Part shown: piece by piece, positions 23,046 through 63,770 of the stretch
How the letters are laid out: every line of letters begins with the position of its first letter
How positions within the stretch are numbered: position 1 is the first letter of the stretch
Source: Macrostomum lignano
Lineage: Eukaryota
Direction of reading: 5' to 3'
Assembly: GCA_002269645.1 (NCBI GenBank)
Contig: NIVC01002468.1
Coordinates: forward strand, 1 to 64,000
DNA: 64,000 nucleotides
The notes under the pieces: model-generated
Told to the model about the DNA's origin: nothing
The model's input: the letters and a program-made list of their open reading frames with translations, nothing else
Databases searched by the model: none
Position numbers and translations under genes: made by a program

Positions 23046-23056
23046 TGGCGACGAGG
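23046..23056 (+). promoter_or_regulatory. Primer-binding site complementary to the 3' end of tRNA-Ser(GCU)
   Basis: TGGCGACGAGG directly follows the 5' LTR. Its reverse complement CCTCGTCGCCA is the 3' end of animal tRNA-Ser(GCU) as I recall it. Confidence 0.75.
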
Positions 23057-23107
23057 AAAATTTAATTCGCCGCGGGACGATACTGCAGTCACCAAATCTT
23101 CATCCCG

Positions 23108-26899: not shown

Positions 26900-26971
26900 T
26901 TTATTTGATCGTTAGACAAAATAGAAAACAGTCATTTATTTCTCTCCAGGTTAATTGCTAAAATGTGGGGG

Positions 26972-27139
26972 TGTTGTGTATGAACTTAAGTTCTATGGTT
27001 TATGGGCGAAGCCTTATTCATATTTTAAGTATAGCAGCCAGCTACTTCGCTGCTGGAAAATATACGCGCTGCATGCATCTACGATCTCTTCCTAACTCGG
27101 CACCTTGCATTCGTCTTCGTTACTACGAAAAGTACAACA
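26972..27139 (+). repeat. 3' LTR
   Basis: Preceded by the purine-rich AAAATGTGGGGG and followed by the TSD CTTTC. Confidence 0.97.
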
Positions 27140-41312: not shown

Positions 41313-42126
41313 GTTTCTTATCTACAAATCTACATAAGTTTCTTATCTACAAATCTACATAAGTTTCTTATCTACAAATCTACATAAGTTTCTTATCTAC
41401 AAATCTACATAAATTTCGTATCTACAAATCTACATAAGTTTCTTATCTACAAATCTACATAAATTTCGTATCTACAAATCTACATAAGTTTCTTATCTAC
41501 AAATCTACATAAGTTTCTTATCTACAAGTCTACATAAGTTTCTTATCTACAAATCTACATAAGTTTCTTATCTACAAATCTACATAAATTTCGTATCTAC
41601 AAATCTACATAAGTTTCTTATCTACAAATCTACATAAATTTCGTATCTACAAATCTACATAAGTTTCTTATCTACAAATCTACATAAGTTTCTTATCTAC
41701 AAGTCTACATAAGTTTCTTATCTACAAATCTACATAAATTTCGTATCTACAAATCTACATAAGTTTCTTATCTACAAATCTACATAAGTTTCTTATCTAC
41801 AAATCTACATAAGTTTCTTATCTACAAATCTACATAAATTTCGTATCTAAAAATCTACATAAGTTTCTTATCTACAAATCTACATAAGTTTCTTATCTAC
41901 AAATCTACATAAGTTTCTTATCTACAAGTCTACATAAGTTTCTTATCTACAAATCTACATAAGTTTCTTATCTACAAATCTACATAAATTTCGTATCTAC
42001 AAATCTACATAAGTTTCTTATCTACAAATCTACATAAGTTTCTTATCTACAAATCTACATAAGTTTCTTATCTACAAATATACATAAGTTTCTTATCTAC
42101 AAATCTACATAAGTTTCTTATCTACA
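41313..42126. repeat. Minisatellite in intron 1, 25-bp unit (GTTTCTTATCTACAAATCTACATAA), about 32 copies
   Basis: Head-to-tail repeats with a recurrent variant ATTTCGTATCTAC. Confidence 0.97.
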
Positions 42127-42265: not shown

Positions 42266-42995
42266 TGGTGTCTTCAGTGTGAAATTTGTAATTCTCAGTT
42301 AAGATGTTGCGCGTTGGTTCTCTAATAAGCGTCGGGTTTTATAGTTAAGAACCTGGCTAAGTCTTAAGGATGGAACGCATCGCTTTTTTCTATTTTAACA
42401 GCAGGATGTTGAAAAATGACAGCTGCAAAAGCGTCTTTTTTCTAATGCTAAAAGAGTCGATTCCAAGTTAACTCAAGCATCAGTTCTTGAGTTGAAGAAG
42501 CTACCGCGGGAATACTCTGGGCTGCCAGAAGGGTGTTTGTGTTCTACAATACTGTGAAACTGTGTAAAAATTGCCTCAAAGACAATTTAAGTCGATTGGC
42601 AGACATGGGTAAGAGTTCTTCTCTCCAAGGCTAACAACTGAAGTAGCTAAATAGTAAAGAGGAAGGTAGCTACCTAGAGAAAAGTAAGCCTAATAGGGAG
42701 GGGTGGAATGAGAAGAAGAGTCAGGGGCGAAACGTTTCATCGGTTGACAGCCGCCATCACTTCTTCATCTAATGAGCAATAAAATCCCACGGCTGTTGTA
42801 CAAAGCAAGAACCGCTAAATTGCGCCAAAAACCATATTTCCTGGAAAAATGGCAGGCCTGTTTTCGGTAAAAGATACAAAGCTCTTCTTGCTTTGAACGG
42901 TGATACACCGTTCATGTTTTTTAAATAAAAATTTCATTTTGAGCTTTAAGTCTCGAAGATACATGATTGATATAATATTGTATTTTGCGCCAGCC

Positions 42996-43155
42996 CCAGG
43001 GGCTTTAGCACCAGGGGGCTTTAGCACCAGGGGCTTTAGCACCAGGGGGCTTTAGCACCAGGGGCTTTAGCACCAGGGGCTTTAGCACCAGGGGCTTTAG
43101 CACCAGGGGCTTTAGCACCAGGGGCTTTAGCACCAGGGGCTTTAGCACCAGGGGC
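42996..43155. repeat. 15-16 bp tandem repeat (GGGGCTTTAGCACCA), about 10 copies
   Basis: Directly visible in the intergenic region between the divergent genes. Confidence 0.95.
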
Positions 43156-43654: not shown

Positions 43655-44950
43655 ATGGCTCCACTACGAAATTTGTCAGCCGTTCTTACTTTTCTTGCTG
43701 TCTGTTTCTTCTGCAACAGCTATGGTTGGGTGGACCACCAGGCTAACGTGATACAGCACTTGAAAAACAACATCACCAATTACAGTCCCCTGCTCCCGCC
43801 CAAGGTGGAGCCGAATGCTAAAATTGCTGTCAGGATGGACCCTCTGCTGACCCACATAACTGCGGTTGACACGGTGAAGCAGACGATACGAGTGAGCGCA
43901 TTGCTTCAGGCAAAATGGGAAGAGGAGCGGCTGGTTTGGAATTCGAGCAAATTCGGTGGTGTTACCGTTATTAATTGGAAAGTTGATGAAATCTGGAGCC
44001 CTTTTATTTTGATGTACAACGGTGTAGGACAGGATCAGGTGCCGCAATCAAAAACGCCAGTTTTCCTAACGTCGCAATCACCCAACTTAACCCAAGTCAC
44101 GGCTCCATGGCGTCGCGAGTTCGAATTCACTTGCAAGTTTGACGTAAGCCAGTTTCCCGTGGACATGCACGACTGCTCTATATAATTCTGCTTCATCGAT
44201 CCTGAACGGCACAACTCTGTGGTACAACCTGAGGTCAACAAGCTGTTTCCGTATAACCCGCTAGTTCTCTACCAAAAGAGCAGCGAATGGACACTTCTGA
44301 ACTTCTCCACGTCTGCAGAGTTCAAGGAGTACGCTCTAATTCAAGGTCCGAGAAAGGCGCAGCTTCCAACGTACGAATTAAAGCTTCAGATCTGTCGAGT
44401 ATCAAATTATTACTTCGTGAACATCATTGCACCGCTCATTCTGTTGTCTGTTCTTCAAGTGCTGGTGTACTTTGTGCCACTGGAGTCCGGTGAGAAGCTG
44501 GGATTCGGCATCACAATCATGCTCAGCTACACTGTTTTCCTGCTGCTCCTCGATGGCATTTTACCGAAGCTGCCATTTGTAGCGTATTTCATCACGTCTG
44601 CAATGATTCTGTCCACAGGATCTCTCCTACTGACTTCTTTGACAATGCGACTTCACTTCACGCCTGCAGATGATGGAATGCCAACCTGCCTTAGAGTCGT
44701 TCTCGTCCGGTTTCTAGGCCGTCTGCTGTGCGCGAAAGGTAGCGATGCCACGGTTCGGACGGAAAATAGCGACAATAGCCGGACCAACGTTAGAAAAGTG
44801 GATGGAGACGCCGACCGGATTCAATCGGATTGGACGGTGGCAACAAAATCTGTCGAGCGGCTGATGGTAGCGCTGGGCGTTGAAGCCACAGCCGCCTTCC
44901 TGGGCAGGCTCATCATCAGGCCCTACTGGGGTTCGCCGCACAAATGCTGA
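43655..44950 (+). pseudogene. Intronless nAChR-like Cys-loop channel subunit, copy 1, with a premature TAA
   Basis: Signal peptide, Cys loop CKFDVSQFPVDMHDC and M1-M4 with GEKLGFGITIMLSYTVF. In-frame TAA at 44183-44185 where paralogs have E; both halves are in the same frame. Confidence 0.9.
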
Positions 44951-46186
44951 CTTGGCTTCACAATTGGCAGCTAACAGTTTCACTGAGACTAAAATCTTCC
45001 TTTATTTTTTAAGGAATAGGCGCGAGAAAATGCGCATCACGCATCAATATTTTAAATGTTTAAATAAATAAATATTTTCGTCTAATCAAACACTACTACT
45101 ACCAGCTATACATTTTCTGTCCAGATGTACTTCTTGTCGCTGGATAATCTTAAATTTAACGATAACTTCACCAAAAAATGCGTCGTTAGCAAAACTTTTC
45201 CATCCGTTTTTAGCTACTTAGAGTAGTTTCGAACTTTTTATGAAACGAGAAACTTCAGTGAGTGAACTAAGAAAAGTTTGGTTGTTATGTAGCCAGAAAC
45301 TTCGTTGCCAGACATTTCGGTGCCAGAGCAAGTGAGAAAGGAGAGTTTCAGAGAAGTGTATTATTATTAATTATATATGTATAATTAATATAATTAGTTT
45401 ATTTAGTTAAATATATTTTTGATGGAGCGAAGGTTTTTTATTTTTTCAGAACCACTCGTAAAAGTCTACTTTTCAAACTAGAAGTGGGAGCGAGTGAAGA
45501 TTCATAGAAACTTGTTTTGTAGAAACTTCGACAAAATATTAAAAGCAGTATTACAAAAAATTGCAAACTATTTAATTTATTATGCAGTTATTGTCTAATT
45601 GCTAATCCACATTAATTCCACTCATTAAACAAATAGCATCAGTAAATTCAATGAGTAAATTAACCGCAGGCACTAACACTCCAGTACACAGTAAAACCAG
45701 GCACCGAATATCCGGTATTCGTTACTAATATGCGCTTATTTGGCTTGGCTCGTCCGTCTAACTTTCATTCGTACCCACTCATTGTTGCGATAGCAAAGCA
45801 ATTAACAATAGAAATGAAAGGCACTAAAAGTGCCACTTAAATTGGTTTGAACGTTATATGGAAAGCTTTCAATCATGACTTTCATTTTATTTTTAGCAGA
45901 ATTAATAATTAAAGCAGCTCTACTATATACTGCGCGCGCCCGTTTGCTTGCTTCTCCTAATCTGATCAATCAATCAACTTGCACAGTTTTCACCACTCAG
46001 GTAAGCGTTGTGTTAGGAGCACCTCTCAAATATGCATACTGTATGCGTGTGGCTCGCGTCAGAAGCCACACAGCAAGCCAATCATGAAACAAATCCATTG
46101 TTTGGACAAACTCCATATTTATAACCAAAGTTGATTGAATTTCTCTTGAGAACCGAGGCATACCAAAGCAGAGCTAGCTGATAAAC

Positions 46187-47491
46187 ATGACGCCGGCTCT
46201 ATTTGTGACTGTCGTCACACTATTGCTGACAGCGGCTGGTGTCCAGGGACAGCAGGACTTCGAGGGTGAACTTGACACGTATTTAAAGAACAACATCAGC
46301 TATTTCAGCCCGAATCTGTTACCAAGAATTAACAAGGACAAGGTGATCCAAATCGTGATGGACTCGCTTCTGTCTCAGATTGTGTCTGTGGACACGGCAA
46401 AGCAGAGCATAAAAATATCAGCATTCATTCAGGCTGTGTGGGAGGAGGAGCGACTGGTTTGGGATCCGAAAAAGTTTGGCGGCGTGAAAGTGATTAACCG
46501 GGACGCGTCAGAGGTCTGGTTTCCTGTTATCATGGTGTATAATGGCATTGGAGACGGACAGGTTCTCGCGCCGCAGATGCCGGTAGATCTTTTGTCGACA
46601 ACAGTGAACAGTACGCAAGTTACTGCAATGTGGCGTCGCGAGTTCGAATTCGCCTGCCAATTTGACGTGTCAAAATTCCCTTGGGATCAGCACGACTGCG
46701 AGTTGGAGTTCTTCTTCAGCGACCAGGGGCACGGAAATTCGATGGTAATTCCAATAGCGAAGACCAATCACCCATTCAATATAAAGGCGCTATACACAGA
46801 GAGCAGCGAGTGGACATTGGTGAATGCATCCTCAAAAGCTGAATATAGGGCTTACAATTTGATTCGCGGAGTAGCTGCGAAGCAAATGCTCCCATCTTAT
46901 ATCATCAGGGTGCAGTTTAAAAGAGTTTCAACGTACTATTTGATAAGCGTAATCACTCCGCTGTTGCTGTTGACTCTGCTTCAAGTGCTGGTGTACTTTG
47001 TACCACTCGAATCCGGCGAGAAACTGGGATTCGGCATCACAATCATGCTCAGTTATACCGTGTTCCTGCTGCTTCTGGACGGCATCCTGCCGAAGTCGCA
47101 GTCAACACCAGCTATTGCATCGTTCATCACGTCTGCCATGATCCTGTCAACGGTGTCACTGCTGTTAACTTCGCTAATCATGCGATTTCACTACGCTCCG
47201 GAGGGCACCAAGATGCCCGCATGCGCCCGAGGCTTCTTTGTCCGATTCCTTGGACGCGTGTTCTGCGTGAACGGCTCGTCCAGTGCGCAGGACAGTGAGA
47301 CTCCGACTGCTTACGCAGCGGCAAGCGAGTCCAGTGTGCGCAAGATGGCCGACTCAGCTCCCGTGGCGAAGTCGGAATGGATTGTGGCTTCCTACGCGAT
47401 TGAGAGGCTGATGGTGGCTCTGGGAGTTTTCGCCACAGCTGCAATCATCGGAGTGTTTGTTTTGAAACCCATGATTCAAAATCAAGACTAA
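46187..47491 (+). CDS. Intronless nAChR-like Cys-loop ligand-gated ion channel subunit, copy 2 (434 aa, intact)
   Basis: Signal peptide, WEEERLVW, WFPVIMVYN, Cys loop CQFDVSKFPWDQHDC, PLESGEKLGFGITIMLSYTVF, short M3-M4 loop and M4; no vicinal CC. Confidence 0.95.
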   Translation: MTPALFVTVVTLLLTAAGVQGQQDFEGELDTYLKNNISYFSPNLLPRINKDKVIQIVMDSLLSQIVSVDTAKQSIKISAFIQAVWEEERLVWDPKKFGGVKVINRDASEVWFPVIMVYNGIGDGQVLAPQMPVDLLSTTVNSTQVTAMWRREFEFACQFDVSKFPWDQHDCELEFFFSDQGHGNSMVIPIAKTNHPFNIKALYTESSEWTLVNASSKAEYRAYNLIRGVAAKQMLPSYIIRVQFKRVSTYYLISVITPLLLLTLLQVLVYFVPLESGEKLGFGITIMLSYTVFLLLLDGILPKSQSTPAIASFITSAMILSTVSLLLTSLIMRFHYAPEGTKMPACARGFFVRFLGRVFCVNGSSSAQDSETPTAYAAASESSVRKMADSAPVAKSEWIVASYAIERLMVALGVFATAAIIGVFVLKPMIQNQD

Positions 47492-48712
47492 GCTGTTTAC
47501 GAGCGTAAGAGGAATCTACGAGCTATCAACGCGCAGTGAATTTAAGACTGTTTGTTTAAATAATCTTGCTCGAAATTTAACCCACTGATAACTCAGAGTG
47601 AGCCTTATTTTTGAAAATTATCGTTTTAATTTTTTCACACATTTGAGGAGGTGAAAATCAGTCGATAATTGGAGTTTACTGGTCTTCAACTTGTACCCTC
47701 GCTGTCACGCCCAAGAAATGTTTATAATCTCAGCTGCACACAATTATGCTCTATCTAAATTAACTCTCTTGGACATTATCCTTTCGCTAAATATAAATTT
47801 TTTCTCAACGCTATCTTCATAAAATTTTCTGTCGTAGCTAAATCTTTGAAATAATACATTCGATATTTTACGAATATATCAGATTTATGTGACGCTTCTA
47901 ATTTTGACCTTGTGACGCTGCCATCTAAGAACTCTGACAGCGCATTTTGTTTTTGTTTTAACTTCTTAGGGGGACAGTGGGGGTACACCTAATTCGTCAA
48001 TTATTTTACCTTAGTTGTCCAGGGACAAAGACATTCGAGTCCTTGCTCGCTAGATTACAAAATATTGTAAATGGGAAGTATTATACTAGCTCCACTCCTA
48101 TTGCTTTATGTAAAGGATATACGAGGGTAATGGTGTGTGTTGTGTTAATGTGTGTTTAATCTTGAAGAAATATCTAATTTAGATGAAGAAAAAAAAACTG
48201 AGTCTGTATTTTACCCTACAGAACCAAAAAACCCTGGGGAACAGCACCACTTCAGTCCAATTACAAGCTTATAACCATAGACATAGAACTAAAGCTTCAT
48301 ATAAAACATAGATATAATCCATAGAAATAAAGACTTTCCGTGACAATATTTGCGTTCTCCGGGATTTTATTTGGTAATATTCAATAATATCCCGTAAAGT
48401 CTTTATGTCTATGGTTTATACGAGATTACACATGCCTTTTTCGGGAGTTATTTTCATAAATCCCTCGGGCCTCAGGCCCTCGTGATTTATACAAATAACT
48501 CCCTCAAAAGGCATGTTTAATCTGATACATAACGATTTACATTACTTCCATTCCGGGATTTTATTAGGTTATATTCAATACGCTCGTATTATCCTGGAAA
48601 ATCCTTATGTCTATGCTCTGTTTAGAGGATTAAACATGCATTTTGAGGGGAGCTGCAATATTGTAAAAAGCCTGACGGCCAAATGATAAATCAAATTTAG
48701 TATAGAAGTTTC

Positions 48713-50632
48713 CAAGCCAATTGAGCCTAGGAGCAAGCAGTTTAATCCTTATTGGGAGAATCAAGCTATTGAAGACTTGCTTTTCATTGTCTATGGCCCA
48801 AAAATGGGGTCTATGGAGCAACCAATTTGAGAATTAATCCTTTTCACAGTGCTCGTATATCCTTCACGAATAACTTTACTGAAATAGCGTCTGCAAATAG
48901 ATGGCATATCAAGAAACGATTGACATTAACACTTTGATTTCAGAGAAACCAATCAAACAGGCAAAGGAAAAGTCATGGCATACAGTATAAGCCGAGAACA
49001 ATCGTGTCTCTCAAAACAGTGTTGGACAGATTGAAACCAAACCCGATCAATGTTCAGAGAATTTCTTCCTCGTTTAAGCAGCGCGGGATGAAGCGAAGCA
49101 TCTGCCAAAACCAGCCACCGAATTTGACTACTGTGGTCTCAGCCGTTGCCTCCTCCGCAATCCGATGAAGAACGAGTACGCGCCACTCGAGCAGTGTTGT
49201 CTCTGGCGGTGGATTGTCCAATTCGATTTGCACCTGTGGCTGTGCAAGCTGCCGCTTGATGGCCGCCTTCAAACAGGAATGCGCACACTCGGTCGGGTTC
49301 AGAAATGGAGAAAATGGAGGCAGTACTACAACCTGCCAGTTCAGCTCAAACTGCTGGGGGATCCTCAGTCCGTTATGGAAGCGAGCTCCATCAATGATGA
49401 CTAAGAAGTTGTCGGCATTGTCTACATCATCTCGATTGTTGACAGCATGGAGTAACTCCTCGACAAATGCTTGAAACACGTTTGCAGACAGTGTGTGACC
49501 GACAATCTTGTGGTGTACCAAGCCGAAATTTGTGCCACTGCCTGCAGGACATTGACCTGAACCCCACGCTGCGTGTGCAAAACAGGTCGGACTCGCTGGC
49601 CACGTCTGCTGCGTCCTTGGGACCGGCGAGTCCAAATGTTGAAACCGGTCTCATCAGCATAGATGAGGTGACGTTCAGGTGGAACACCAGTGAGCCAGTG
49701 AGCAAATTCTCGTCGGAGTGCCCGATATTCAGGACTATTCCTGACCACTGGCACATCGGCGTCTCGACCAATGCACTTCAATGTAATCAGCTGCTTGTCC
49801 AAGGTCCGGCTTACAGTAGTAGTACTCACTTCGGGGCCTGGACAGGTGTCAGTCAACTTGCGTCGCAACTCTTTCAACGTCATTAGAGGATTGTTATCCA
49901 GTGATGAAAGAAGTAGTTGGATGTGTTTCTCTTCCAGTTTCGATGCTCGATCTCCACCCCGTCGTGTGCGGTCCCGGCGTCCCGTGGTTTCATAGCGACG
50001 CCTGATAGAATAAACTGTTTTTCTCTTTACGTCCAGCCATCGCGAAATGTGCTCAGCACTATCACCTCTATCGATGGCAGCGACAATCAGGTCGTACTTT
50101 TCGTTGCTTATCTTGCGATAGGGTTCTCGCCCTGCAGGATTCTGCTCATCTACTCCATCTTGGGCTGTAGCAAAACTTTCGTCACTGCTCTGCTCGCTAA
50201 ATTCTTCGTCTGCCATGTCTATGTTTGTCTAATGAAATCTGTTATTTTCTATGGTCTAAGGCTTGCGCAACTGTGGAAAGGATTAATAGCGCGCCCAAAT
50301 TCTCAAATTGGTTGTTCCATGGACCCCCATTCGGGCCATAGACAATGGATAAATAATCAGCGGTCCCAGTGCGTGACAACGATTGTCTGGCGAGCGCCGG
50401 TAGGCGCGAGCCATAGACAAATCGTTGCCACGTGCTGCGACCGCTGATTCTTTGCATTGTTTTTCTATTTGACAATCCTAAAGAAAATGCATTGCTTGTA
50501 GTAATGGATGGTTCTGCATTAAAAATGTGAATAATGATCGTCAAATTGCTAGACAATGAAAAGCAATTGTCTTCAATAGCTTGATCTTCCCACTAAGGAT
50601 TAAATTTCTTGCTCCTAGGCTCAATTGGCTTG
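48713..50632 (-). mobile_element. IS630-Tc1-mariner DNA transposon with imperfect TIRs and a frameshifted transposase
   Basis: Transposase 50216-49054 has an HTH N-terminus, DETG, DGARFH and LPPFSPFLNPTE, with a -1 shift near 49535. 48713-48835 is an imperfect inverted copy of 50298-50350 plus 50549-50632. Confidence 0.85.
49054..50216 (-). pseudogene. Tc1/IS630-like DDE transposase (33 residues between the second D and E), one frameshift
   Basis: ORFs 49422-50216 and 49054-49635 join if one G is added near 49535 (QAV-GTNFGLVHH). Confidence 0.85.
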
Positions 50633-50886
50633 AAAAAAAGCAAGTCTATTTTTTTCAAGCCAATATTTATCAAATATCTCGCTAGAAATGTGATAACACT
50701 GGCGCTGCTTTATGCTTTCATATTGATGAAAGCTATCTGTCCAATCGAATTTCAGTAGCAAACGGATTTTCAGGCTATCTTTGAGCCCAACCTGTAGTTG
50801 GTCGGGGTGAAACGGCGTTAAAACTATTTTATCAGACGTACCAGTTGTCAATGCGATCAGCAATGCACTGGAAAATGAGACATAAA

Positions 50887-52158
50887 ATGCTATTCTCATT
50901 CATACTGCTGGTTTCGCTTTTAGCCTCGACACTAGCTACTGATTTCGATGTCCTGCTAATGCAGCACCTAAACAACAAAATTGCAAACTACAGCCAATGA
51001 TTCTGCCAATATTAAACAAGACAAAGAAAGTCAACGTGTCGTTTGACATCATGGTCAGCCCATTAGTCTCAGTGGACACTGCCAAGCAGAACATCAAAAT
51101 CGCTGCCTACGTTTAAGCCAGCTGGGAGGAGGAGCGACTCGTGTGGAATCCTGCCGACTTTGGTGGCGTCAGTTCTACTAGCTGGGACCCAGCGAAAATT
51201 TGGTACCCAATCATCATGACATACAACGGTAACGGCGATGAACAGATTCTGATTCCTCGGATTCCTACTTACACTGGCTTCTAAAAATTCAAGCGTGACG
51301 ACGGTTGCTTCATCCTGGCGCCGGGAGTTCGAATTTTTTTGTCAATTCAACATGTCCGACTTTCCGTACGACCAGCACACTTGCGAGCTGCTGTTCTTCC
51401 TTGCAACTCAGGCCAATCCTGATGCAGTGCGGCCTGTTCGCAGCGCAATGCCATGCGGGTGACAGGAATCTACAAGCCTAGCAACGAGTGGATATTGAAA
51501 AATGCTACAGCAGATTTGGAAACCAAAAAATATTTTATAATCGAAGGACACAATGAGACCGAACTTTCGACCTTTGTTCTGCGATTGCACTTGTAGCGAG
51601 TGTCAACGTACTATTTCATCAACATCATCACGCCTTTGCTGCTGTTGACTTTGCTCCAGGTGTTGGTGTACTTTGTACCCCTGGAGTCCGGTGAGAAGCT
51701 GGGATTCGGCATCACAATCATGCTCAGCTACACCGTGTTCTTGCTGCTTCTGGACGGAATTCTGCCGAAGTCGCAGAAGATGCCCGCCATTGCCCTGTTC
51801 ATCACGGCCGCCATGGTGCTGTCCACCGTGTCGCTGCTGCTGACATCGCTGGTCATGCTGTTCCACTACAGGCCGGAGGGCAGCCGCATGCCGGAATGCG
51901 CTCGGGCGGCCTTTGTTCGATGCCTGGGCCGACTGCTCTGCGTCAGCGGCGCCACAGGTGGGCCAGCAGAGTCCGGCTGAAGCTGAGGGCGATGGCAACT
52001 GCGTGAGGAAACCGCCTACGGCGGAAGAGAAATCGGTCGATTCAGACTGGGTGGTGGCCACCCGCGCTATCGAGAGATTCTTGTCGCTGTTAGGAGTGGT
52101 TGCTACCGCCGTCATAATTGTAGTCTTTCTGATGGGGCCGTATCTTCAGTTCTCTTAA
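50887..52158 (+). pseudogene. Intronless nAChR-like subunit, copy 3, multiply disrupted
   Basis: Signal peptide MLFSFILLVSLLAS.., frameshift near 50995, TAA 51114-51116, two more shifts in the ECD, TAG 51594-51596 and a shift near 51980. Cys loop CQFNMSDFPYDQHTC and an intact M1-M3 block remain. Confidence 0.92.
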
Positions 52159-54995
52159 TGAAACTTGACTAACTGAGATTTGAATGCTTATGAAAGGCAT
52201 TGGCATTCTATTGACTACCATATTCATTGATACTCTTTGCAATGGTTTTTGTTTTATTTTCTGAATAATCTTCTGAATTGAATTTTCGGAATTTTTTAGC
52301 TCTGAATTTAGGAAACAGGCATTGATCCCCGGGCCTTCTTGGGCAGTGACTAGATAGATCTGTAGTGAAACATGCGTGATCAATTTTTTCATGCATAGGC
52401 TAATGCCAATCGCGGAAGGGCTTGAATAAACGAAAGTAACTAGTCACCGTTGCCATTGGATACGCACTAGTCAAGCGCGAAATGCAGGCAATGGAAATAG
52501 GCTTGGCGTTTTGCTAATGCAATTAACGTTTGGGCAAATATTTGAATAGCGAGCCATGCGGCCCGTTCGTCCAGTTGCCATGGCTGGGCGCTAAATCTGC
52601 TTCAGTTGCAGAGTAAACAGTCTGTATTTCAGCGAGAGCAGAAACCGTGTATAATTAATAAAGTTCTTCCTAGCTAGTTAATTGATGGTAGCTAGGAGAG
52701 GAAAGATTAAGTGCTCTCCCTATAACAAGATTATTATTAATAATAATTACAAAGGGTTGTGGCTTCATCCACTATACTGCTCTTCTGCAATTCTGAGGCA
52801 ATTCTGGCCATTCCGCCGAGTCCTGAGCACACACAAGCGCGCTAATACTGTAAGCAGGCACGCACTCGTGCACACGCTCACACAGGGCCTTTTTGACTTT
52901 CTAATCGTCAGGGGATGTACACCCTCTGCGCCTTGGGGTTTGGCCCGCATGTGGGCGAGAATCGCAGGACAACCCCCTGGGCCAACTTTCGTGCACAGGC
53001 CCGATATGCATGTGGCCGCGTACTGAACCGATCCCGGGGGTCGCGGGGCGAGTCAGACGGCTCTGCCTACATCGAATACCGAAGTCCTCAGAACTTCCGA
53101 ACTTGGCAACAGAAATCGGCCACAATTCAAAATCAAATCAGAATTCAAGCTTCCATTTAAACACGTACTGTTAAAAATTATCCCTTAAAAAGCTTTTTTG
53201 AGGCAGAGAGGCAGGAATTACAGATGCAAATTACATATGTAACATGTAAATATTAGACAGGCAAGTTATAATTACATCAAATTTTTCCTGATCAAACATG
53301 AATAGGTACAAAAAATCAAAAAAATACAAATCGAGCTACAAGTTGCGAAGTTTGAATGCAGGTAGGTAGGCTTGGGTCCATGTGATTTTGCAGCAGTGCA
53401 TTTAGCTCCGTGGCAGATTTTGTCTGAATCGCATTGAGTCCTAGAGAGTCTTACTAAAGAGCTAGGGATTCACCCAATAAAAAATTTCCGGTAGTAACCA
53501 CATATTAAACTCATGCTTTTCTGGTATGAGAGGTCTTCATTTCTATGTACTCTAACGTAGGGGTACAGTTACATCGGTCAGTCATCAATACATGTGTATA
53601 CCATGTCGCTATGTCCCCTATAGCCTCTTTTCTAAGAATCGGTGGCAGTTCTTGTGCTCGTACATGCAGGTCTTACCACCTCATCAACACTGACGTTTCC
53701 TTATTACCTATGTTAATTCCACGTTCGGAGCACGAAAGCAGCCTGACGCAAACACCAACGTGGGGGAGCGAGGCACGCAAGCCCCATAAAACCCTATAGA
53801 CTTGGGACATAATATTTCGACGAAAAGAGTAAAATAAGCTATCAGCAACGATTAAGGAAAAAGCGATCGCCATTATGAATAAGGATAAAAGACACCACAG
53901 AGGATAAAACTTGACTCTGCGCAAACAGACAAGACGAGCCGACACAACGCTAGAAGACCTTAAAACCATATCGGGGGAGGTGGGTGCGCGCATGGCAGAG
54001 GGACGAAGAGGGAGCGGGGCGACGGAAATAAAGAATACATGACGCAAAAAGTGTTCAGAGCAAGGGAGAGACCGGTGCCCGACCAGCTATTGACCACCGT
54101 AAACGTCACCCCCTAAAGGGGCACGCTTACGGGTAATTAAGAGCAAACGTTTGATTACTTTCTATGTGTCTGTCAGTTGAATTACATGAAGTGGAATATG
54201 GTTTTAAAATATAAACTAAAAAATACAGATGGAGCCAGACAGACTTAACATCAGATACCCCAGAAAGATAATACAAGACTGAACAGAATTGATGTAGCTA
54301 ATAGCCACATATTTGTACTGTAGATATGACGATATCCTGGAAATTTCGTCTAAAACCTAAGATTTGAGGCTGTGAACTGAGAATTTAGGATAAATGTTAA
54401 TTACATATCCTACTGACATGTTCCATTCCGAAAAATTATAAAAATAGCACCGCTCAACTCATCCTATTAAAATTTTTGTTACATAGTCAGAAGCTGAGAA
54501 TGGTAAAAAAGAGATTCATAAAACTAATAAGTCGAGCTAGGCCATTTTTATAACTCTTAGGCACAGGAAATGTAAGAAGAACATCAAGTTAACATACATG
54601 TAGAATCTTAATTTTCTAAGCATATTAGGATCTTGTAACATGTATACGAAAGGCAAGATATCAAAAGATGAACCAGGGTCTACTTAAACTAGTTTAAGAA
54701 GTTCCTGAAGATGAACATTAGGTCTGCCTCCGATCAAATGCAATAACAATTTTTGCGCTATGCTATGCTATGCCACTCAGCTGCGGAACATACTACTATA
54801 AGTACAGCGTGTTTTTGGTACTCAAATTTATTCGTCATCGTATCGATTGGATCTCGACTATAAAATATTTGAACCAACCCTGGTGAGTACTAAGCAAAGC
54901 AAGCACAGAAATACTTTTCGTTGATACATTGATAGGAAAGATTCTCGTTTAACCAATAGACCTCAGTCAAAACACTTTCTAGGACTGCAACAAGG

Positions 54996-56251
54996 ATGTT
55001 TTTCAAGTAATCATAATCGCTTCTCTCTTCACGCATTCAGCAGCAACCGATTTCGATGTTCTGCTGATGCAACATCTTAAGCAAACCATAAAAAACTACA
55101 GTCCTTTCATACTGCCGCGAATTAATAAGACCAAAACCATTAAAGTAGCTACGGACATCATGGTCAGCCATCTGGTCTCAGTGGACACCGCCAAGCAGAA
55201 CTTGAGGATATCTGCCTACTTTCAAGCCAGCTGGGAGGAGGAGCGACTCGTGTGGAATCCTGCCGACTTTGTTGGCACTCAGCTCACTCGCTGGGACCCA
55301 GCGCATATCTGGTATCCGACAATCATGATATACAATGGCAACGGCGAGGACCAAGTTCTCGTGCCTCAGATCCCTGTTGCATTGTTATCGTTAAGGCCAA
55401 CGCTGACCATAGTCACAGCATACTGGCGCCGGGAGTTCGAGTTTTATTGCGAGTTTAGCATGGTTGACTTTCCATACGATCATCATGTTTGCGAGCTGTT
55501 CTTTATTTACCATAATCAAGGCTATCTCGATTCAATCATTCATCCTGTTCCGAGCACGGCCCATCTACGTGTGCAGGGAATCTACAATCCGAGCAACGAA
55601 TGGATTCTGACCAATGCCACCACACACTTTGAAAAGAAACTTTACCACGTATTGGATGCACATGAGACTGCATTCCCAGCGTTCGTACTGAGATTGCAAT
55701 TAAAGCGAGTGTCAACGTACTATTTCATCAACATCATCACGCCTTTGCTGCTGTTGACTTTGCTCCAGGTGTTGGTGTACTTTGTACCCCTGGAGTCCGG
55801 TGAGAAGCTGGGATTCGGCATCACAATCATGCTCAGCTACACCGTGTTCTTGCTGCTCCTGGACGGAATCCTGCCGAAGTCGCAGAAGATGCCCGCCATT
55901 GCCCTGTTCATCACGGCCGCCATGGTGCTGTCCACCGTGTCGCTGCTGCTGACATCGCTGACCATGCTGTTTCACTACAGGCCGGAGGGCAGCCGCATGC
56001 CGGAATGCGCTCGGGCGGCCTTTGTTCGATGCCTGGGCCGACTGCTCCGCGTCAGTACTGCAACGTCGCCACGGGTCGGCCAGAAACCGTTGGAGGGTTT
56101 CGGCATAGCCGATAGAAGTGCCTTGGAGGTTGCCGGAGAAGCCAGGGAATTCGATTTAGACTGGGTGGTAGCGGCACGCGCAATCGAAAGGCTCATCTTG
56201 CTGTTCGGAGTGGTTGCTACTGCTGCTATCATCGGCTTGTTTTTACTATAG
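54996..56251 (+). CDS. Intronless nAChR-like subunit, copy 4. The signal peptide is out of frame by 1 nt in a T-run (real allele or assembly error); otherwise intact.
   Basis: ATGTTTTTCAAGTA at 54996 would read MFFQVIIIASLFTHSAATDFDVLLMQH with one more T. The ORF from 55067 is open, with Cys loop CEFSMVDFPYDHHVC and M1-M4. Confidence 0.85.
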
Positions 56252-57957
56252 AATAATGGACATATAATAAAGCATTAGATCAAGGAACTGCCGTACGGTA
56301 AAAAGGTACAAAATCTTTTCACAATTCGTGCCATCGAAATTTCGTATCCTTTCGTGGTATCGCGAACGAGCTTTAAAAGCTCTTCCTTATTAAGACAAAG
56401 TTTGAAGGGATCAGACTTGGACAGTGCCGTAAATTAGGCAGCCAGCGATCGAGGAGGCAAAGCAGTCATATGCCTATTCCACTGACCCATCTGCACTGAC
56501 ACTAATGAAAACGTACGCAGGCACACTCTCGCACATTGTGTAAAATGGCCTCTGGCTTTGTCATCGTGAGACACACTCGCTGAAGCACACTTCGATTACA
56601 CACTCTATGCCCTCATGTACTTTGAGTAAAAAGTCTCGTAAAATAGAAATGTTATTTTATAGTTTGGGACAAAATAAAATGTCTTAAAGACTAGTTGAGC
56701 ACTGTATTTTTTATAGTATATTATTTAAATGCACTAATATGTAGTTGTTTTTGTCCTAAATAAAAAATTAAATACTCAACTGATTGAAGCATATAAGATA
56801 CGCCCAGACCAGTAGAAAATATTTCTATTAAATTAAAGGTTCCCCTCAATCATGATATTCTTTTGGCCCTGCACATGTATTGGGACCAGTCAGTATTTAC
56901 ATACCGTCTATCTAAAAAGTGCCGAAAAGATTTACGATATATTTGAAGCGATTAATTCTTTTCACAATTCAAGTTTTCATTGCAAATATAGCATTGAGCC
57001 TATCTACACAGTGGCAGCATCCTCTAGGTTATAAATGCTGTGTATATCGATATGCATATTGGCAGGTAAATATGCTTTAGGCAAACAATGGAGACTGCTT
57101 TCGATAGAGTGTTGGATCCCTATAATCGATTCAATGGCTCAGGCTGCAATCGATTTGTTTGTTAAAGCCCAGTTGCGTAGCGGTTGAAGTGCTCTCGCTT
57201 CTTCTGGACTTTCCAGCTCAGTAGGCAATTAGCTAGCTCAACAGAGTCGATATCTGGAATGTATGGACGGTATTACAAACCCTCAGTTGACAAAGGCAGC
57301 TGCACTCGTTACAGAAGAAAGAAGTCCACTACAGCCGTAAGAGCTTAAACTATGTAGACTGTGTAGGACTTTTCAGTGAGGTGCTTACAAATCCCTTGAG
57401 ACAGCAAAGCATTTCTGTACTCTTGTGAAAACTCTGCACTAGCTCTCATATTCGCATACAGATATAAATGTAGTCTTAAATATTTTAAGTTATGTATTAA
57501 TTTAAAAAAGTATAAACCGCAGAATTCTTTACCTGCTATAATTATTTTAAATTAAGTTTCCTATCGTTATTTCTATTTAGTAAGTCACAAGATTGGCAAA
57601 GTTAATTTTGGTAGAACATTCAGAGTGGTCGGTTCGTAAATTTAACGGTGGATTTTATGGATGAAAGGCTGGGCCAAAAGATTCAAAGGAAGTTGGTCAT
57701 TCCTTGCGCTAAACGCGTCTTGCACGTTATTCGCAATCTACGGATAAGATGGATCAGCATCGCTGTCACAACGGAACTTAATTTTGGACACACCCTTAAT
57801 TGTCTGCGAGAAATAAAGCAAAGCAAATGGTCTGTGAAGTCGGATGTTTCAATGGTGTCAGTGTATGAAATGCTGTACATCTGGCGTTGTCCCTGTCTTT
57901 AAGAGATCTGAAGACAACATAAAAACTATGCTAAAACACTATGGGACAGCCTAGAGA

Positions 57958-57984
57958 TAGAGAGATATGCCAGAGAGAGAGAGG

Positions 57985-58058
<74 letters not shown>

Positions 58059-58075
58059 GAGAGAGAGAAGAGAGG
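57958..58075. repeat. (GA)n microsatellite
   Basis: Directly visible; a shorter (GA)n lies near 59133-59157. Confidence 0.97.
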
Positions 58076-58689
58076 TCACGGCGTGTTAAATTATTTAATT
58101 GAAAGTAGGCTTCCGGTTTCAAGCCTCTGGGCTCTTCATCAGGCCAAAAACTGTGTGTAATACAATGCAAGTTGGTCTTTTAAGTATTATTTTTCTTAGT
58201 CTGATAAAATTGATGGATAGTTGTACATATGAGGGATGTACATTTAAAACCCTGTTTTGTCTAGCTCTAACTTGTCCCAGAGGCTTTCCACCATTCATTT
58301 CAATCGACAGTATATTTATTATATAAAAACTGTTTTTTTTCGAAGTACTATACGATTAGATGAAATGCCGGTATTGGAGGTAGGAGCATAAAAATCGACA
58401 TTTGTGCGTACAATCAAGTTTGGATAAAATAAATGACAAAGTGAATAAATATTGTACTTCAATAGGGTAAAGTGAGCGCATTGGTTAAAATGATTCAATG
58501 GTTTCCTGGCTGAGACTTTAATTTATTGGGAGCCAGGATCGGCTCTGTAAATTACGTTGCCGTGTAAATGCGGGCATTATGCGGGAGCCTGGTTTATTTT
58601 GTAGTTTATCAAAGTTTTTAGCAATCTCGTTGGCGAGCCAGACCGTAGATGGGTGAACAGGAAGGACCAATGGGATGGGTCGGAGAAGA

Positions 58690-59110
58690 TGATTGTCAAC
58701 CCTGATTTTCGTACCTGGTGGGTGTTTTGTCAGTCCCCAGTTTTTTTAATCCAGATTTCTTCCCTTAGTTCGATTATGTTGTTATTAAGAACCTGTTCAA
58801 TGTCAATGGTGACAAAGTTTGCAATCGAGTGATTGGGGGTGAGAAAGTGCGCTGACCCCGAAGTCACGACTCTCCTGTTAATATTTGACCTGTGTTGGTT
58901 CATTCTATCTCTCATTGTTCTTCTTGTCATCCCTAGATAGAGGATTTTCCCAGGGTGGCACTGGTTGCAGGAGATGCCATAGATGATGCTCTTAGAGCCA
59001 CAGGACAGGCTCTAAGAGATTAAAAAACCGGAAGCCGGTCTCAATCCCTGGGCGGAGAGATCATGCGGTGAGTGGGTGCAGCATTTGCAGCGGGATGACC
59101 AACAGGGATG
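58690..59110 (-). mobile_element. Penelope-like retroelement 3' fragment (GIY-YIG endonuclease remnant)
   Basis: SIIYGISCNQC..LYLGMTRRTMRDRMNQHR..HF..NHS..IEQ..REEIWIK, with an upstream RCKCC-like motif. Confidence 0.75.
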
Positions 59111-60068
59111 GAACCCTTTGGGAAGCAGACCCAGAGAGAGAGAGAGAGAGAGAGAGATCATTGCGATTTGTTTGAAATGAAAATTCTCGCCAACTAGCTT
59201 CTCCGATTAAGGTAGTCGGAATTTGTTTATCACATAATTTTATACTCGCAAAGAATACACAGAGAGAGAGATCATTACGATTCGTTTAAAATTGAACTTC
59301 TTGCTAATTTCGTCGAAAAAGTTGTCGCCGTAATGAATTGCCTTCGAAATGGTCGTCGCCGAGATGGTCTGTTGCCAAATTGGACTGTTACTCTGGCGAG
59401 GACAGACGCGAACTCGGCGCTCTGCAGACTGCCTGCTGGCCGACACCCGCGCCGCAGATTCAGCTTTGAGGCACGGCCTGCGTGAGGGCTGCTCTTGATT
59501 TATAAGACCCAACGGACAGCTTAGTTTGTTTTTGTCAGCTGTGCAACTTCAACTTCAAAACGACATGGCTTTGAAAGGGAGCGAAGAATGCTCGAAGGAT
59601 TCATCCAGTTTATTCATTAAATAGATAGTAGCCATATACATAATATTCACGTAAATTTCATTAGCATCCTTTTGCAACATGCTAGCATACATGGAATACG
59701 AGTACATATCCGAGTATGCTATAAAGGTGCACCGTGCGCGCATTCGTGCTAAAGATAGGTCGCTACTGCAGGCCGCACCCGGGCCAGAATATGCAGCGAT
59801 GAAAAGTTTCTATGCAAATAACGACGTCATACGAGGTCAGGGATCTGCTAATTGGAATATCAGACCAATATAAGCAGCTAACTTTACTATATTTGATCTA
59901 TTGAATTACCTAAATGAAATTCAAATAAGAATCAATCTAGAACTTACACTAGCACGCCAGGGTGATGAGTTGCGAGATCTCTGGTGCTGTATATATATGT
60001 CTGCAGTGGAAAACCGAGCAACTTACAATTAACCGATCAATTCAAAGCAAAGCCCTGTCTCGTGCAAA

Positions 60069-61349
60069 ATGCTCACTAGAACAGCGATCCTTTTATGTCT
60101 TCTAATAGCTGTTACGCCAACGACTGTCGACTTTGACGCCAAGCTGCTAAAATATCTAAAAAACAATACCGATCACAATCCGTTGCATTTTCCACGAATC
60201 GACAAAACCAAGATGTTGAACATATCGCTGAACTTCTTGCTGAGCCACATTGTCTCCGTGGACACAGCTAAGCAGAGCATGAAGGTGTCAGCATACGTTG
60301 AAGCCAGTTGGGAGGAAGAGCGACTCGTGTGGAACCCAGAAGACTTCGGCAATACCGTGTACACCCGATGGGAAGCTGACCAGATTTGGCAACCGACGAT
60401 CATAGTCTACAATGGCAACGGCAATGATCAGACATTGGTGCCGAAGGTGTTTGTTGGATTAAAGTCGAAAACTCCCAATTTGTCTGAGGTGATAGCCACT
60501 TGGCGACGTGAGTTCGATTTCTTTTGCGCGTACAACATGGCCGAGTTTCCATTTGATCGACACACTTGCGAAATAAAATTATTCGTCACTGACGCATACT
60601 ATCAAAACTTGACGCATCCAGCGGTTCCGCGTATCAAGTACAAGCTTCTAGGCATTTACCAGCATAGTAAAGAATGGAATCTCGAAACTGCTACAGTCAG
60701 CATATTGACCCAAACATATGACATTTATGAAGAAATGGAATCCACTCTTAAACTACCCATTTACAGAGTCGTATTAAAAATTAAAAGGATATCAACCTAT
60801 TATGTAATTAACATTATAATTCCTCTGTTGCTGCTCGCCCTTCTCCAAGTGCTGGTGTACTTTGTGCCCCTGGAGTCCGGTGAGAAGCTGGGATTCGGCA
60901 TCACAATCATGCTCAGCTACACTGTGTTCCTGCTACTCCTGGACGGAATCCTGCCGAAGTCGCAGAAGATGCCCGCCATTGCCCTGTTCATCACGGCCGC
61001 CATGGTGCTGTCCACCGTGTCGCTGCTGCTGACCTCGCTGACCATGCTGTTCCACTTCAGGCCGGAGGGCAGCCGCATGCCGGAATGCGCTCGGACGGTC
61101 TTTGTTCGATACCTGGGCCGCCTGCTCTGCGTCAGCGGCGCCACTAGGGCATCACAGAAGACCAATCAAATTGCTGTCGAAGGCTATACAGAGAACGAAA
61201 ATGCCCGGAGGCCAAGTGAAAAAGAAGCGTCAGAATCGGACTGGGAAGTAGCAGGTCGAGCAATCGAGAGGCTCATGTCGCTAATGGGCGTTGTTGCTAC
61301 CGCCGCCATTATTGGGGCATTCCTGCTGAGGCCACTGTTAATTAACTAA
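60069..61349 (+). CDS. Intronless nAChR-like Cys-loop subunit, copy 5 (426 aa, intact)
   Basis: Signal peptide, WQPTIIVYN, Cys loop CAYNMAEFPFDRHTC, GEK-M2 and M4; no vicinal CC. Confidence 0.95.
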   Translation: MLTRTAILLCLLIAVTPTTVDFDAKLLKYLKNNTDHNPLHFPRIDKTKMLNISLNFLLSHIVSVDTAKQSMKVSAYVEASWEEERLVWNPEDFGNTVYTRWEADQIWQPTIIVYNGNGNDQTLVPKVFVGLKSKTPNLSEVIATWRREFDFFCAYNMAEFPFDRHTCEIKLFVTDAYYQNLTHPAVPRIKYKLLGIYQHSKEWNLETATVSILTQTYDIYEEMESTLKLPIYRVVLKIKRISTYYVINIIIPLLLLALLQVLVYFVPLESGEKLGFGITIMLSYTVFLLLLDGILPKSQKMPAIALFITAAMVLSTVSLLLTSLTMLFHFRPEGSRMPECARTVFVRYLGRLLCVSGATRASQKTNQIAVEGYTENENARRPSEKEASESDWEVAGRAIERLMSLMGVVATAAIIGAFLLRPLLIN

Positions 61350-62480
61350 CTAAAGAACACAATGCTGTTAACAACTGTGAGAACTAATTTTATGGTTGTT
61401 TTTATTAGTGTTGCAAAATTATTAACTGGTTTTGCAACTCATCTTGATATTCTTGCTTTAAAATTGTCATGACATACATAAATTATTAATGTTGATTTTA
61501 TTAACGGTACTTACCCGCACGAAATCGAACCCGGGACTCAGGACAAGACTCAGATGCGTTGCTGGTTGCAGGAACCGCTACTAAAAAGAAATAATTTTTC
61601 CGGCCTGGGCGCTGTCAACTAAAATAATTATTTATTTATGGCGTCCATTATGCTTATTATAGGACGGAATACACACACGCTGCTATCTGCTTACGTATAA
61701 TATACTCAATATATTATCTACGCTACTAATATGTAGTAGTTTAGCTATTTTTTGTACAATTTGATGTTGGAAAATGTTGGAAGATGTTGGTCTTTTTACA
61801 TACCCGTTGGAATTCCCGTTAAAAGGTTGAGAGTATATTTTCGATATCGCATTTGCATTGTAAAGCGAAATATTATATTAAAAGTGATACCAACTTAACG
61901 CTCTAGAATGGAGCCTGAAGTAAGGCTCCGAATAAAATATATACATAGACGGACAAGTCGGAGATATTCTCTAAGAGAGTTCCAGAAACGAACTTGCATT
62001 GATAGGATTTTTCGTCATTTATTTCAACCAGTCGGTTTGTCACTTTTTCGGAAATCTACTTCGAGCTTACTTACTTCTATGTACTTACAGTGCTTAATTT
62101 GACAGCCCCTTTCGAACATTTTGAAGAGTTTCTCTTTACTACTACCATGCAGTAGTTGATAATGTATATTTTACCAGCTTTCTCGTTTACTAACACACGG
62201 AGGATTCGTGCGCTCAGGGGGTAAGGGATATTTAATCAAACACGGAAGCAACGTCACCAGTTATATTACACACAAGAGTACCTCCACAAATGAAATTAAT
62301 TCAATTACAGCAGTTCCACTCGTTGCCATGGCGATTGATTCAGCACTGGTAGACCAGACGCGTTATTGGCTAAACAGCTATCCTATAGGGTCTTTTCCTC
62401 AACTCTGCTTTCTATGATGATATAGAGTAGAAAGCAGTAACCAACATTGGCCTCTTACACCGTATCGACACATCGACACA

Positions 62481-63770
62481 ATGTCCGTACGCGAAATTCT
62501 ACTAGTCGCCACAGCGATTATAGCTGCCACTTGTGGCGGCTCAGCTCAAGATAGAGATCTGCAACACGAGCTGCTGCAGTACTTGAAGAACAATATCACC
62601 AACTATAGTCCGCTGCTGCGACCCACAATTAACGCCTACAAGCCTACGTACATCACTATGGATACATCCTTGACCCAGCTGGTATCGGTAGACAGTGCCA
62701 AGCAAAGCGTCAAGATTGGGGCTTTCGTAATGGCCGGCTGGACCGAGGAGCGTCTGGTCTGGGATCCGGCCAAGTTCGGGAACCTAACCGTGATTAACTG
62801 GGACAATTCGAATGTCTGGTTTCCTGTCATCCTCATCTATAATGGCATCGGAGACAACCAGATGCTCACTCCGCAGATGCCAGTGTATCTAAGGTCGATC
62901 CAGTCCAACCTTACCAGAGTCATCGCGGGATGGCGTCGAGAGTTCGAATTCTCGTGTGAGTTCGACGTGAGCAAATTCCCCATAGACAGGCACGTCTGCG
63001 AGCTCGAGTTCTTCTTTAGCGACCAGGGCCATGACAACCAAATGCTGATTCCTGTCAAGAACAATTTGACGCCATTTCAAATAGACGGACTTTATCGAAC
63101 TAACAGCGAATGGAAGTTGTTGAATGCGTCGACGTCGTCCGAACGGAAGCCGTACAAACTCGTTCAAGGTGCACCGGATGTGCTTCTACCAACTTATGTG
63201 ATCCGTCTGGAGATCGAGAGAGTCTCCGCCTACTACTTTATGAACATCATCACACCACTGCTACTGCTGACTTTGCTACAAGTGCTGGTATACTTTGTGC
63301 CCCTGGAGTCTGGCGAGAAGCTGGGATTCGGCATCACAATCATGCTCAGCTACACTGTGTTCCTTCTTCTGCTGGACAGCATCGTGCCCAAGTCGCAGAC
63401 AACACCAGCGATCGCTTCGTTCATCACGGCCGCTATGATCTTGTCGACGATATCTCTGCTACTAACGTCGCTAATTATGCGTCTGCACTTCGCTCCGGAG
63501 GGCAATCGGATGCCGGCCTGCATGCGTGCCGTTTTGATTGGCTTCTTGGCTCGAGTGTTCTGCGTTGGCGGTGCTGCCAAAATCAACAAGGTCGAGATCA
63601 AGAAAGGGACTAGCATCGAAAAAAAGAACACTACTGATGAAGAGGACACTCCAGTTGTTCGATCCGATTGGGTGGTTGCTACGCACGCTGTCGAACGACT
63701 CATGGTTGCTATGGGAGTGGCCGCCACTGCAGCTATTATTGGAGTTTTCGTCATCCAACCGTACACCTAA
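62481..63770 (+). CDS. Intronless nAChR-like Cys-loop subunit, copy 6 (429 aa, intact)
   Basis: Signal peptide, WFPVILIYN, Cys loop CEFDVSKFPIDRHVC, GEK-M2 and M4; closest to copy 2. Confidence 0.95.
   Translation: MSVREILLVATAIIAATCGGSAQDRDLQHELLQYLKNNITNYSPLLRPTINAYKPTYITMDTSLTQLVSVDSAKQSVKIGAFVMAGWTEERLVWDPAKFGNLTVINWDNSNVWFPVILIYNGIGDNQMLTPQMPVYLRSIQSNLTRVIAGWRREFEFSCEFDVSKFPIDRHVCELEFFFSDQGHDNQMLIPVKNNLTPFQIDGLYRTNSEWKLLNASTSSERKPYKLVQGAPDVLLPTYVIRLEIERVSAYYFMNIITPLLLLTLLQVLVYFVPLESGEKLGFGITIMLSYTVFLLLLDSIVPKSQTTPAIASFITAAMILSTISLLLTSLIMRLHFAPEGNRMPACMRAVLIGFLARVFCVGGAAKINKVEIKKGTSIEKKNTTDEEDTPVVRSDWVVATHAVERLMVAMGVAATAAIIGVFVIQPYT

Follow-up and report, generated by a model that had tools for sequence, protein, structure and literature searches.

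A partly decayed tandem array of divergent nicotinic-type Cys-loop receptor genes in the flatworm Macrostomum lignano: a probable lineage-specific subfamily

The first 64,000 nucleotides (nt) of Macrostomum lignano contig NIVC01002468.1 (assembly GCA_002269645.1), referred to here as the window, contain a tandem array of genes for proteins that resemble nicotinic acetylcholine receptor (nAChR) subunits. The array consists of six copies, c1 to c6, which are all on the + strand and span positions 43724–63761 in a tblastn comparison of the c2 protein with the 64-kb window; the same comparison reveals no seventh copy elsewhere in the window. An earlier note on this DNA, made from the sequence without database searches, had described six intronless genes in the same orientation. 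Six single-exon copies on the + strand are indeed found, but intact open reading frames (ORFs) are present only in c2, c5 and c6. The array is made up of three intact genes, one near-intact copy (c4) and two pseudogenes (c1 and c3):

43655–44950, + strand: c1, one reading frame with an in-frame TAA at 44183–44185 and a 3-aa deletion in the M2-M3 loop
46187–47491, + strand: c2, intact single-exon ORF of 434 aa
50875–52158, + strand: c3, degraded pseudogene (≥3 stops, ≥3 frameshifts)
54996–56251, + strand: c4, ancestral ATG (54996) 1 nt out of frame at a T5 run, otherwise intact
60069–61349, + strand: c5, intact single-exon ORF of 426 aa
62481–63770, + strand: c6, intact single-exon ORF of 429 aa

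Every copy aligns colinearly and without a break to full-length nAChR subunits, and the coding region is therefore a single exon. The ORFs of c2, c5 and c6 run from a hydrophobic N-terminus to a stop codon beyond the fourth transmembrane segment (M4). Signal peptides, previously assigned to all six genes, were judged by eye from the N-termini; they are present in c1, c2, c5 and c6, but not in c3 and c4 as these are written. The stop codon of c1 (44183–44185) lies in a segment that reads DCSI*FCF, compared with DCELEFF in the paralogs, which have a Glu at the position of the stop. The interior of M4 in c1 holds a Glu and an Arg. In addition, c1 displays 18 private changes at positions that are invariant in the other members, compared with 5–8 in the intact copies and c4. 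It is probably a pseudogene.

Copy c4 presents a different situation. Addition of one T to the T5 run (54999–55003) produces an ORF of 418 aa that has a signal peptide and begins MFFQVIIIASLFTHSAATD. The first in-frame ATG in the sequence as it stands is at position 55067, and the ORF from there has no signal peptide. There are only 8 private changes, a number similar to that in the intact copies. The T5-run lesion may be genuine or may result from an error of assembly. The possibility that a spliced leader supplies the start codon was set aside; it is not needed, since the out-of-frame ancestral ATG and a 1-nt insertion or deletion explain the observation. Two tandem repeats are found beside or within the array. 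A 15-nt minisatellite (x11) is at 42992–43155, immediately upstream of c1, and (AG)x61 is at 57953–58074, between c4 and c5.

The Pfam domains Neur_chan_LBD and Neur_chan_memb are matched by c2, c4, c5 and c6 with E values of 1e-19 to 1e-27. In a phmmer search of PDB, the best solved relatives are the human alpha3 and alpha7 nAChRs (E ~1e-40, 23–25% identity); the muscle subunits are next in order and 5-HT3A reaches only ~1e-24. An AlphaFold2 model of c2, made from a 98-sequence alignment, has a mean pLDDT of 88.5 and a pTM of 0.80. The expected beta-sandwich is present, as are the four helices (positions 249–269, 278–300, 309–335 and 391–432). When this model is compared with PDB structures by Foldseek, the best 50 matches are all nAChR chains (alpha4, alpha7 and muscle subunits), with TM-scores of 0.73–0.88. 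The Pfam matches, the PDB sequence matches and the model with its Foldseek comparison are in agreement on the nAChR-like identity that had been proposed, and they support an assignment of the array proteins to nicotinic-type Cys-loop receptor subunits, nearer to nAChRs than to 5-HT3, GABA or Gly receptors. The encoded subunits would be expected to form pentameric cation channels.

The family was compared with the 92 nearest nAChR-like representatives outside it, and 98 proteins were aligned in total. Positions W92, W111, C157, P165, D167, C171, R246, P258 and P302 are invariant across the 98 aligned proteins, and all are kept in the family. They include both Cys of the Cys-loop, the Cys-loop Pro and Asp, the Arg before M1, the M1 Pro and the M2-M3 Pro. 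The C-x13-C loop described earlier is found in all six copies together with an FPxD motif, e.g., CQFDVSKFPWDQHDC in c2. The loop between M3 and M4 is also as short as had been noted, at 54–63 aa versus a median of 121 in the 92 other nAChR-like proteins.

The M2 segment is the most uniform part of the family. The sequence GEKLGFGITIMLSYTVFLLLLD, which the earlier note had reported as essentially invariant, is identical in all six copies. The M2 segment SGEKLGFGITIMLSYTVFLLLLD has Glu at -1', Leu at 9' and an outer Asp, and is the same in c1 to c6. Glu at -1', Leu at 9' and an outer Asp represent the cation-channel pattern among pentameric ligand-gated ion channels (pLGICs). The sequence SGEK is present in all six copies and there is no PAR motif; the -1' Glu is found in 94 of the 98 aligned proteins. 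The cation-type pore signature claimed for the array is borne out in that all six copies carry the -1' Glu, and cation selectivity is predicted from the sequence. Uniformity extends to the nucleotide level in two overlapping features:

47024–47052, + strand: M2-core 29-mer CTGGGATTCGGCATCACAATCATGCTCAG in c2; the others start at 44498, 51699, 55808, 60888 and 63321
55778–56047, + strand: gene-conversion tract from M2 to post-M3 in c4, corresponding to 51669–51938 in c3 and 60858–61127 in c5, with 96–99% identity

There are six exact matches to the M2-core 29-mer, with zero expected by chance. Synonymous and fourfold-degenerate sites within it are identical as well, both pseudogenes included, and the codons that flank it vary at synonymous sites. 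When invariant columns that are at least 3-fold degenerate are compared, a single codon is used at 7 of 8 in the M2 core versus 5 of 79 elsewhere (Fisher p = 1e-6). The conversion tract is 270–360 nt in length and is approximately 90 nt longer at the 5' side in the c3–c4 pair. Identity within the tract is ~99% between c3 and c4 and ~96–97% for c4–c5 and c3–c5, compared with 65–75% overall. Codon identity between c4 and c5 at sites with the same amino acid is ~45% in the extracellular domain (ECD), increases to between 32/34 and 35/38 in the tract, and is lower again in M4.

Identity at synonymous sites of M2, together with the 96–99% identity of the tract in c3, c4 and c5, implies that gene conversion contributes to the invariance of M2. 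The invariance is thus not a sign of selection alone: strong constraint stands, but part of it is due to gene conversion. The pore module (M2-M3) is evidently kept uniform by both. The 29-mer identity is likely due to gene conversion over short tracts centred on the segment that is conserved most, and constraint acting on the RNA or DNA itself is a possible alternative cause.

The binding site is atypical, as the earlier note had described. The family was aligned at the agonist-binding loops with sloth alpha3, Nematostella alpha10, a hemichordate alpha7-like protein and others. The loss of the loop-B Trp, claimed previously, is found in all six copies, which have I, S, A, H, T and S at that position; Trp is present in 82 of the 92 comparison proteins. 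The loss of the loop-C vicinal Cys-Cys is likewise confirmed, as no copy has a CC in the stretch from loop B to M1 (CC is present in 53 of the 92 elsewhere). The loop-D Trp position is L, F or Y in the family and Trp in 71 of the 92 comparison proteins, and the Tyr198 position is Leu or Phe. The loop-A motif WxPD is changed to WxP(V/T/F/I), with the Asp replaced by a hydrophobic residue. In loop E, just before the Cys-loop, a family-specific invariant WRREFEF is found in place of xLPPxIFKSS. The loop-A Trp and Tyr93 and the loop-C Tyr190 are kept. With the loop-B Trp, the loop-C CC and Tyr198, and the loop-D Trp all gone, canonical binding of acetylcholine (ACh) by the array proteins as alpha-type subunits appears unlikely.

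The ECDs are strongly diverged, as had been observed, with a proportion of nonsynonymous differences (pN) of 0.27–0.41 and with synonymous sites saturated (pS 0.71–0.89). Among c2, c5 and c6, pN is 0.27–0.39 in the ECD and 0.06–0.10 in M1-M3. The ratio of nonsynonymous to synonymous rates (dN/dS) is 0.16–0.21 in the ECD where it is computable, and 0.06–0.13 in M1-M3. On these values the intact copies have evidently been under purifying selection, with their coding sequences constrained. Within the ECD, variability is highest in loops B, F and C, with pairwise identities of 0.23–0.32 versus 0.50–0.57 in the beta-core.

No similarity is found between the intergenic DNA of the copies, and the likeness is limited to the coding sequences. 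This, together with the saturated synonymous sites, implies that the duplications are old. A search of the array for marks of retroposition found neither poly(A) remnants nor any flanks, upstream motifs or k-mers common to the copies, although at a divergence this high such marks would be erased in any case. Macrostomum genes have on average about 3–5 introns (PMC10468722). By analogy with molluscs (PMC6896357), an origin of the array by retroposition followed by tandem duplication is plausible.

A word-indexed protein search produced only three close proteins, the UniParc-type entries P0001, P0002 and P0003. P0001 and c2 are 95% identical over the full length. P0002 is ~50% identical and its best match is c5, at only 55%, which implies at least a seventh paralog outside the window. 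P0003 is the counterpart of c3, with 92–95% identity in the aligned pieces; its first ~205 aa are intact and are followed by a different frameshift. Since P0003 is intact where c3 is broken and has a later frameshift of its own, the two copies have decayed independently. P0003 and c3 represent homeologs, alleles or strains. M. lignano is a hidden polyploid (PMC10468722), and we infer that polyploidy could explain the second, 95%-identical copy P0001. A further protein, P0012 (UniRef A0A1I8GG98, Macrostomum lignano), was obtained from a HMMER scan and matches the last 181 aa of c2 with 98% identity, in line with an origin of the window in M. lignano or a very close relative. No encoding contig for c2 or P0002 is on record in an exact look-up.

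The HMMER scan was exhaustive; it was made with a family profile and covered 1.84 billion representative proteins. Family members score 276–800 bits per domain and everything outside the family scores at most 191 bits; among the 1.84 billion representatives there is no relative closer than generic nAChRs. Matches of 200–300 bits were considered as intermediate kin and rejected. They are gene models of 800–1200 aa in which tandem genes are fused, with at most 166–191 bits per domain, and they come from bivalves, an annelid, a hemichordate and a tardigrade. The nearest single-domain matches come from across the Metazoa (coral, sea anemone, sea star, amphioxus, sloth, mite, annelid and molluscs). 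In addition, neither the family profile nor the invariant M2 DNA pattern detects a relative of the family in JGI metagenome contigs.

Neighbour joining recovers the family as monophyletic in 100 of 100 bootstraps, and its stem in the tree measures 0.77 substitutions per site. Its sister in this tree, P0079 (Lingula alpha3-like), is uninformative; it is a canonical subunit with the loop-B Trp and CC and has no derived features in common with the family. A comparison with both nAChRs and the cephalopod chemotactile receptors (CRs) had been suggested as a check. The tree covers nAChR-like proteins, and with respect to these the family stands as a monophyletic group on a long stem; a word-indexed search with a mixed profile gave only 10 proteins, too few for a named phylogeny. 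The proposed independence from cephalopod CRs agrees with the monophyly of the family and with the scores, as nothing outside the family exceeds 191 bits per domain; both argue against a close relationship to the CRs. These results support an expansion that is specific to the Macrostomum lineage.

The remainder of the window includes a large gene, mobile elements and repeats. The intron-rich neighbour mentioned in the earlier note is a multi-exon polycystin-1/REJ-like gene on the opposite strand. It and the mobile elements of the window are as follows:

380–41300, - strand: polycystin-1/REJ-like receptor gene, multi-exon, with lectin, fibrinogen-C, PKD and REJ domains
36189–36491, - strand: C-type lectin domain exon of the polycystin-like gene
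8904–9554, - strand: fibrinogen-C domain exon of the polycystin-like gene
5659–8658, - strand: PKD repeats of the polycystin-like gene, in one exon of 999 aa
4495–5658, - strand: REJ domain of the polycystin-like gene
22878–27139, + strand: Ty3/gypsy-type long terminal repeat (LTR) retrotransposon with 168-nt LTRs that are 99% identical
48709–50636, - strand: Tc1/mariner-type DNA transposon between c2 and c3, with terminal inverted repeats (TIRs) at 48709–48776 and 50569–50636

The 999-aa PKD exon has no homolog in a word-indexed protein search. The Ty3/gypsy element lies within the span of the polycystin-like gene, which is on the minus strand, and has gag-protease and RNaseH-integrase ORFs with a broken reverse transcriptase region between them. 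It is probably young, given the 99% identity of its LTRs. The TIRs of the Tc1/mariner element are 68 nt and 91% complementary; its transposase is frameshifted, with the helix-turn-helix and DDE_3 regions distributed over two overlapping ORFs (49054–49635 and 49422–50216). At 13964–15021 on the + strand there are two adjacent ORFs (194 and 149 aa) in an AT-richer stretch with a GC content of 0.40; they have no Pfam match and may represent a repeat element. Two tandem repeats are also present, (TAGAA)x82 at 38990–39399 and a 25-nt minisatellite (x33) at 41313–42126.

The six paralogs are best explained as a highly divergent subfamily of nicotinic-type Cys-loop subunits that would be specific to the Macrostomum lineage. 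The array would turn over by birth and death, leaving three intact copies, one disabled by a single base and two pseudogenes. The pore is kept uniform while the ECDs diverge most in loops B, F and C. The core for folding and gating is retained; it comprises the -1' Glu and 9' Leu of M2 together with the Cys-loop, the Arg before M1 and the M2-M3 Pro. We consider it probable that the proteins are lineage-specific, cation-selective Cys-loop subunits that no longer bind ACh at the canonical alpha-type site. They would most likely be orphan ligand-gated channels with a non-canonical agonist site and, less likely, accessory subunits. The confidence expressed here and that expressed for each rival explanation below stand separately and are not meant to add up to a whole. 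Several points weigh against the proposed explanation. Tyr93 and Tyr190 are present, most copies have an aromatic F or Y at the loop-D position, and loop E has the invariant Trp of WRREFEF; with these retained aromatics a quaternary-ammonium ligand (ACh, choline or betaine) is possible. The dN/dS values are rough, since dS is saturated. Highly variable C and F loops are common in pLGIC paralogs and provide only weak evidence of a diversification of ligands. Finally, half of the array is disabled, and the locus may be disappearing.

Under a rival explanation, the array proteins would be accessory or structural beta-like subunits. They would co-assemble, either among themselves or with the alpha-type nAChR subunits of Macrostomum, into heteropentamers that ACh still gates at other interfaces. 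The lack of the CC pair is what defines non-alpha subunits. The extreme uniformity of M2-M3, gene conversion included, would keep the pore and transmembrane interfaces compatible in mixed pentamers, and the invariant WRREFEF is on loop E of the complementary face, versus the variable loops of the principal face. However, the loop-B Trp is kept in the non-alpha subunits of vertebrates and in most of those of invertebrates, and the loop-D Trp in the ones that form sites; the family has neither. The loop-A Asp of WxPD is also replaced, and the long stem branch (0.77) points to a functional shift and not to a conserved partner role. An accessory function is on balance unlikely. Another explanation is that the whole array is dead and consists of decaying, unexpressed retrocopies whose remaining ORFs are open by chance. 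Disabling lesions are present in 3 of 6 copies, a DNA transposon is located within the array, and intron-poor nAChR copies of bivalves are more often unexpressed (PMC6896357). This explanation is very improbable, as three ORFs of 426–434 aa are still open despite the saturation of synonymous sites, pN among c2, c5 and c6 is low, all core structural residues are kept, and P0001, the copy in the database, is full-length as well (95% identity).

The role that the earlier note had put forward is a sensory one: the intact copies would encode peripheral chemosensory or contact receptors that are gated by environmental small molecules and have arisen convergently with the cephalopod CRs. The array does have the CR-like combination of features: the genes derive from nAChRs, are intronless and form a cluster, and their products lack the residues of the aromatic box and the CC but have a conserved cation pore. 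Divergence in the ECD is greatest in the pocket loops B, F and C, and turnover by birth and death is typical of chemoreceptor families. But the family is small, with six loci and at least one further paralog (P0002), where chemoreceptor repertoires usually comprise tens to hundreds of genes; loop variability is generic for pLGIC paralogs; and for orphan receptors with losses of this kind, Alpo4 among them, no sensory role is established (PMC10338036). A sensory function is quite unlikely. It is equally doubtful that c2, c5, c6 and perhaps c4 are flatworm-specific ionotropic chemoreceptors, in which a fixed pore homogenised by gene conversion would be combined with diversifying ligand-binding domains. 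If true, this would represent a second, convergent recruitment of nAChRs for environmental sensing.

If the intact copies are functional non-cholinergic channels, the pattern of nAChR duplication and repurposing known from molluscs, annelids and cephalopods would reach the Platyhelminthes. M. lignano is a tractable model with RNA interference and transgenesis, and an orphan nAChR branch could be de-orphanised in this species. The combination of a pore homogenised by gene conversion with diverging ECDs would also provide a clean, small case of mosaic concerted evolution in a receptor family. No work on the genes of the array was found in the literature. As it stands, the locus is an uncharacterised and unsurprising lineage-specific receptor cluster that is half decayed.

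A comparison with known systems places these features in context. The array proteins are similar to the vertebrate alpha7 and alpha3 subunits in the fold, the Cys-loop, the four transmembrane segments, the SGEK...LSxTVFLLL pore motif and the residues of the gating interface. They differ in that the loop-B Trp, CC, Tyr198 and the loop-D Trp are absent, the WxPD and xLPPxIFKSS motifs are altered, and the M3-M4 loop is roughly half as long as usual. Alpo4, an orphan nAChR-like receptor from the annelid Alvinella pompejana whose structure has been solved (PDB 8BX5 and related entries; PMC10338036), is also a divergent nAChR-like protein without the loop-C CC and with the -1' Glu. In the PDB sequence search with c2 it has E = 1.1e-25, a weaker match than human alpha7 and alpha3. 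The aromatic cage is kept in Alpo4, including the loop-B Trp (W159), whereas the array family has lost this Trp.

The cephalopod CRs are, like the array genes, derived from nAChRs, intronless and clustered, and they have lost the canonical ACh signature while having a cation-type pore. This is a resemblance and not a homology at the level of the clade. CRs form a predominantly cephalopod clade (PMC13174522). As no sequence among the 1.84 billion is closer to the family than generic nAChRs, the resemblance would be convergent; no octopus or squid CR is found among the best 50–60 PDB matches listed in the sequence and Foldseek comparisons. The CRs are expressed in suckers and have terpenoid and bitter-compound ligands, according to the accounts of van Giesen 2020 and Allard 2023 given in PMC10338036 and PMC13174522.

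The closest parallel in gene organization is in the lophotrochozoans, where tandem arrays of 2–12 intronless and highly divergent nAChR genes have been documented extensively for molluscs and annelids (Jiao et al. 2019, PMC6896357). Clades of mollusc receptors in which binding residues are altered, as well as CR and CR-like clades, have also been described (PMC13174522). The genes of the array have in common with these expansions a single coding exon, a tandem arrangement, lineage-specific paralogs, diverged ligand-binding residues and some pseudogenes. The differences are that the family is small, with approximately seven paralog lineages seen, that it shows no specific relationship to any mollusc or brachiopod sequence, and that it is located in a flatworm, the Platyhelminthes being outside the survey of Jiao et al. 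(PMC6896357). The pattern itself is already documented in lophotrochozoans; what is new here is the flatworm phylum and the model species.

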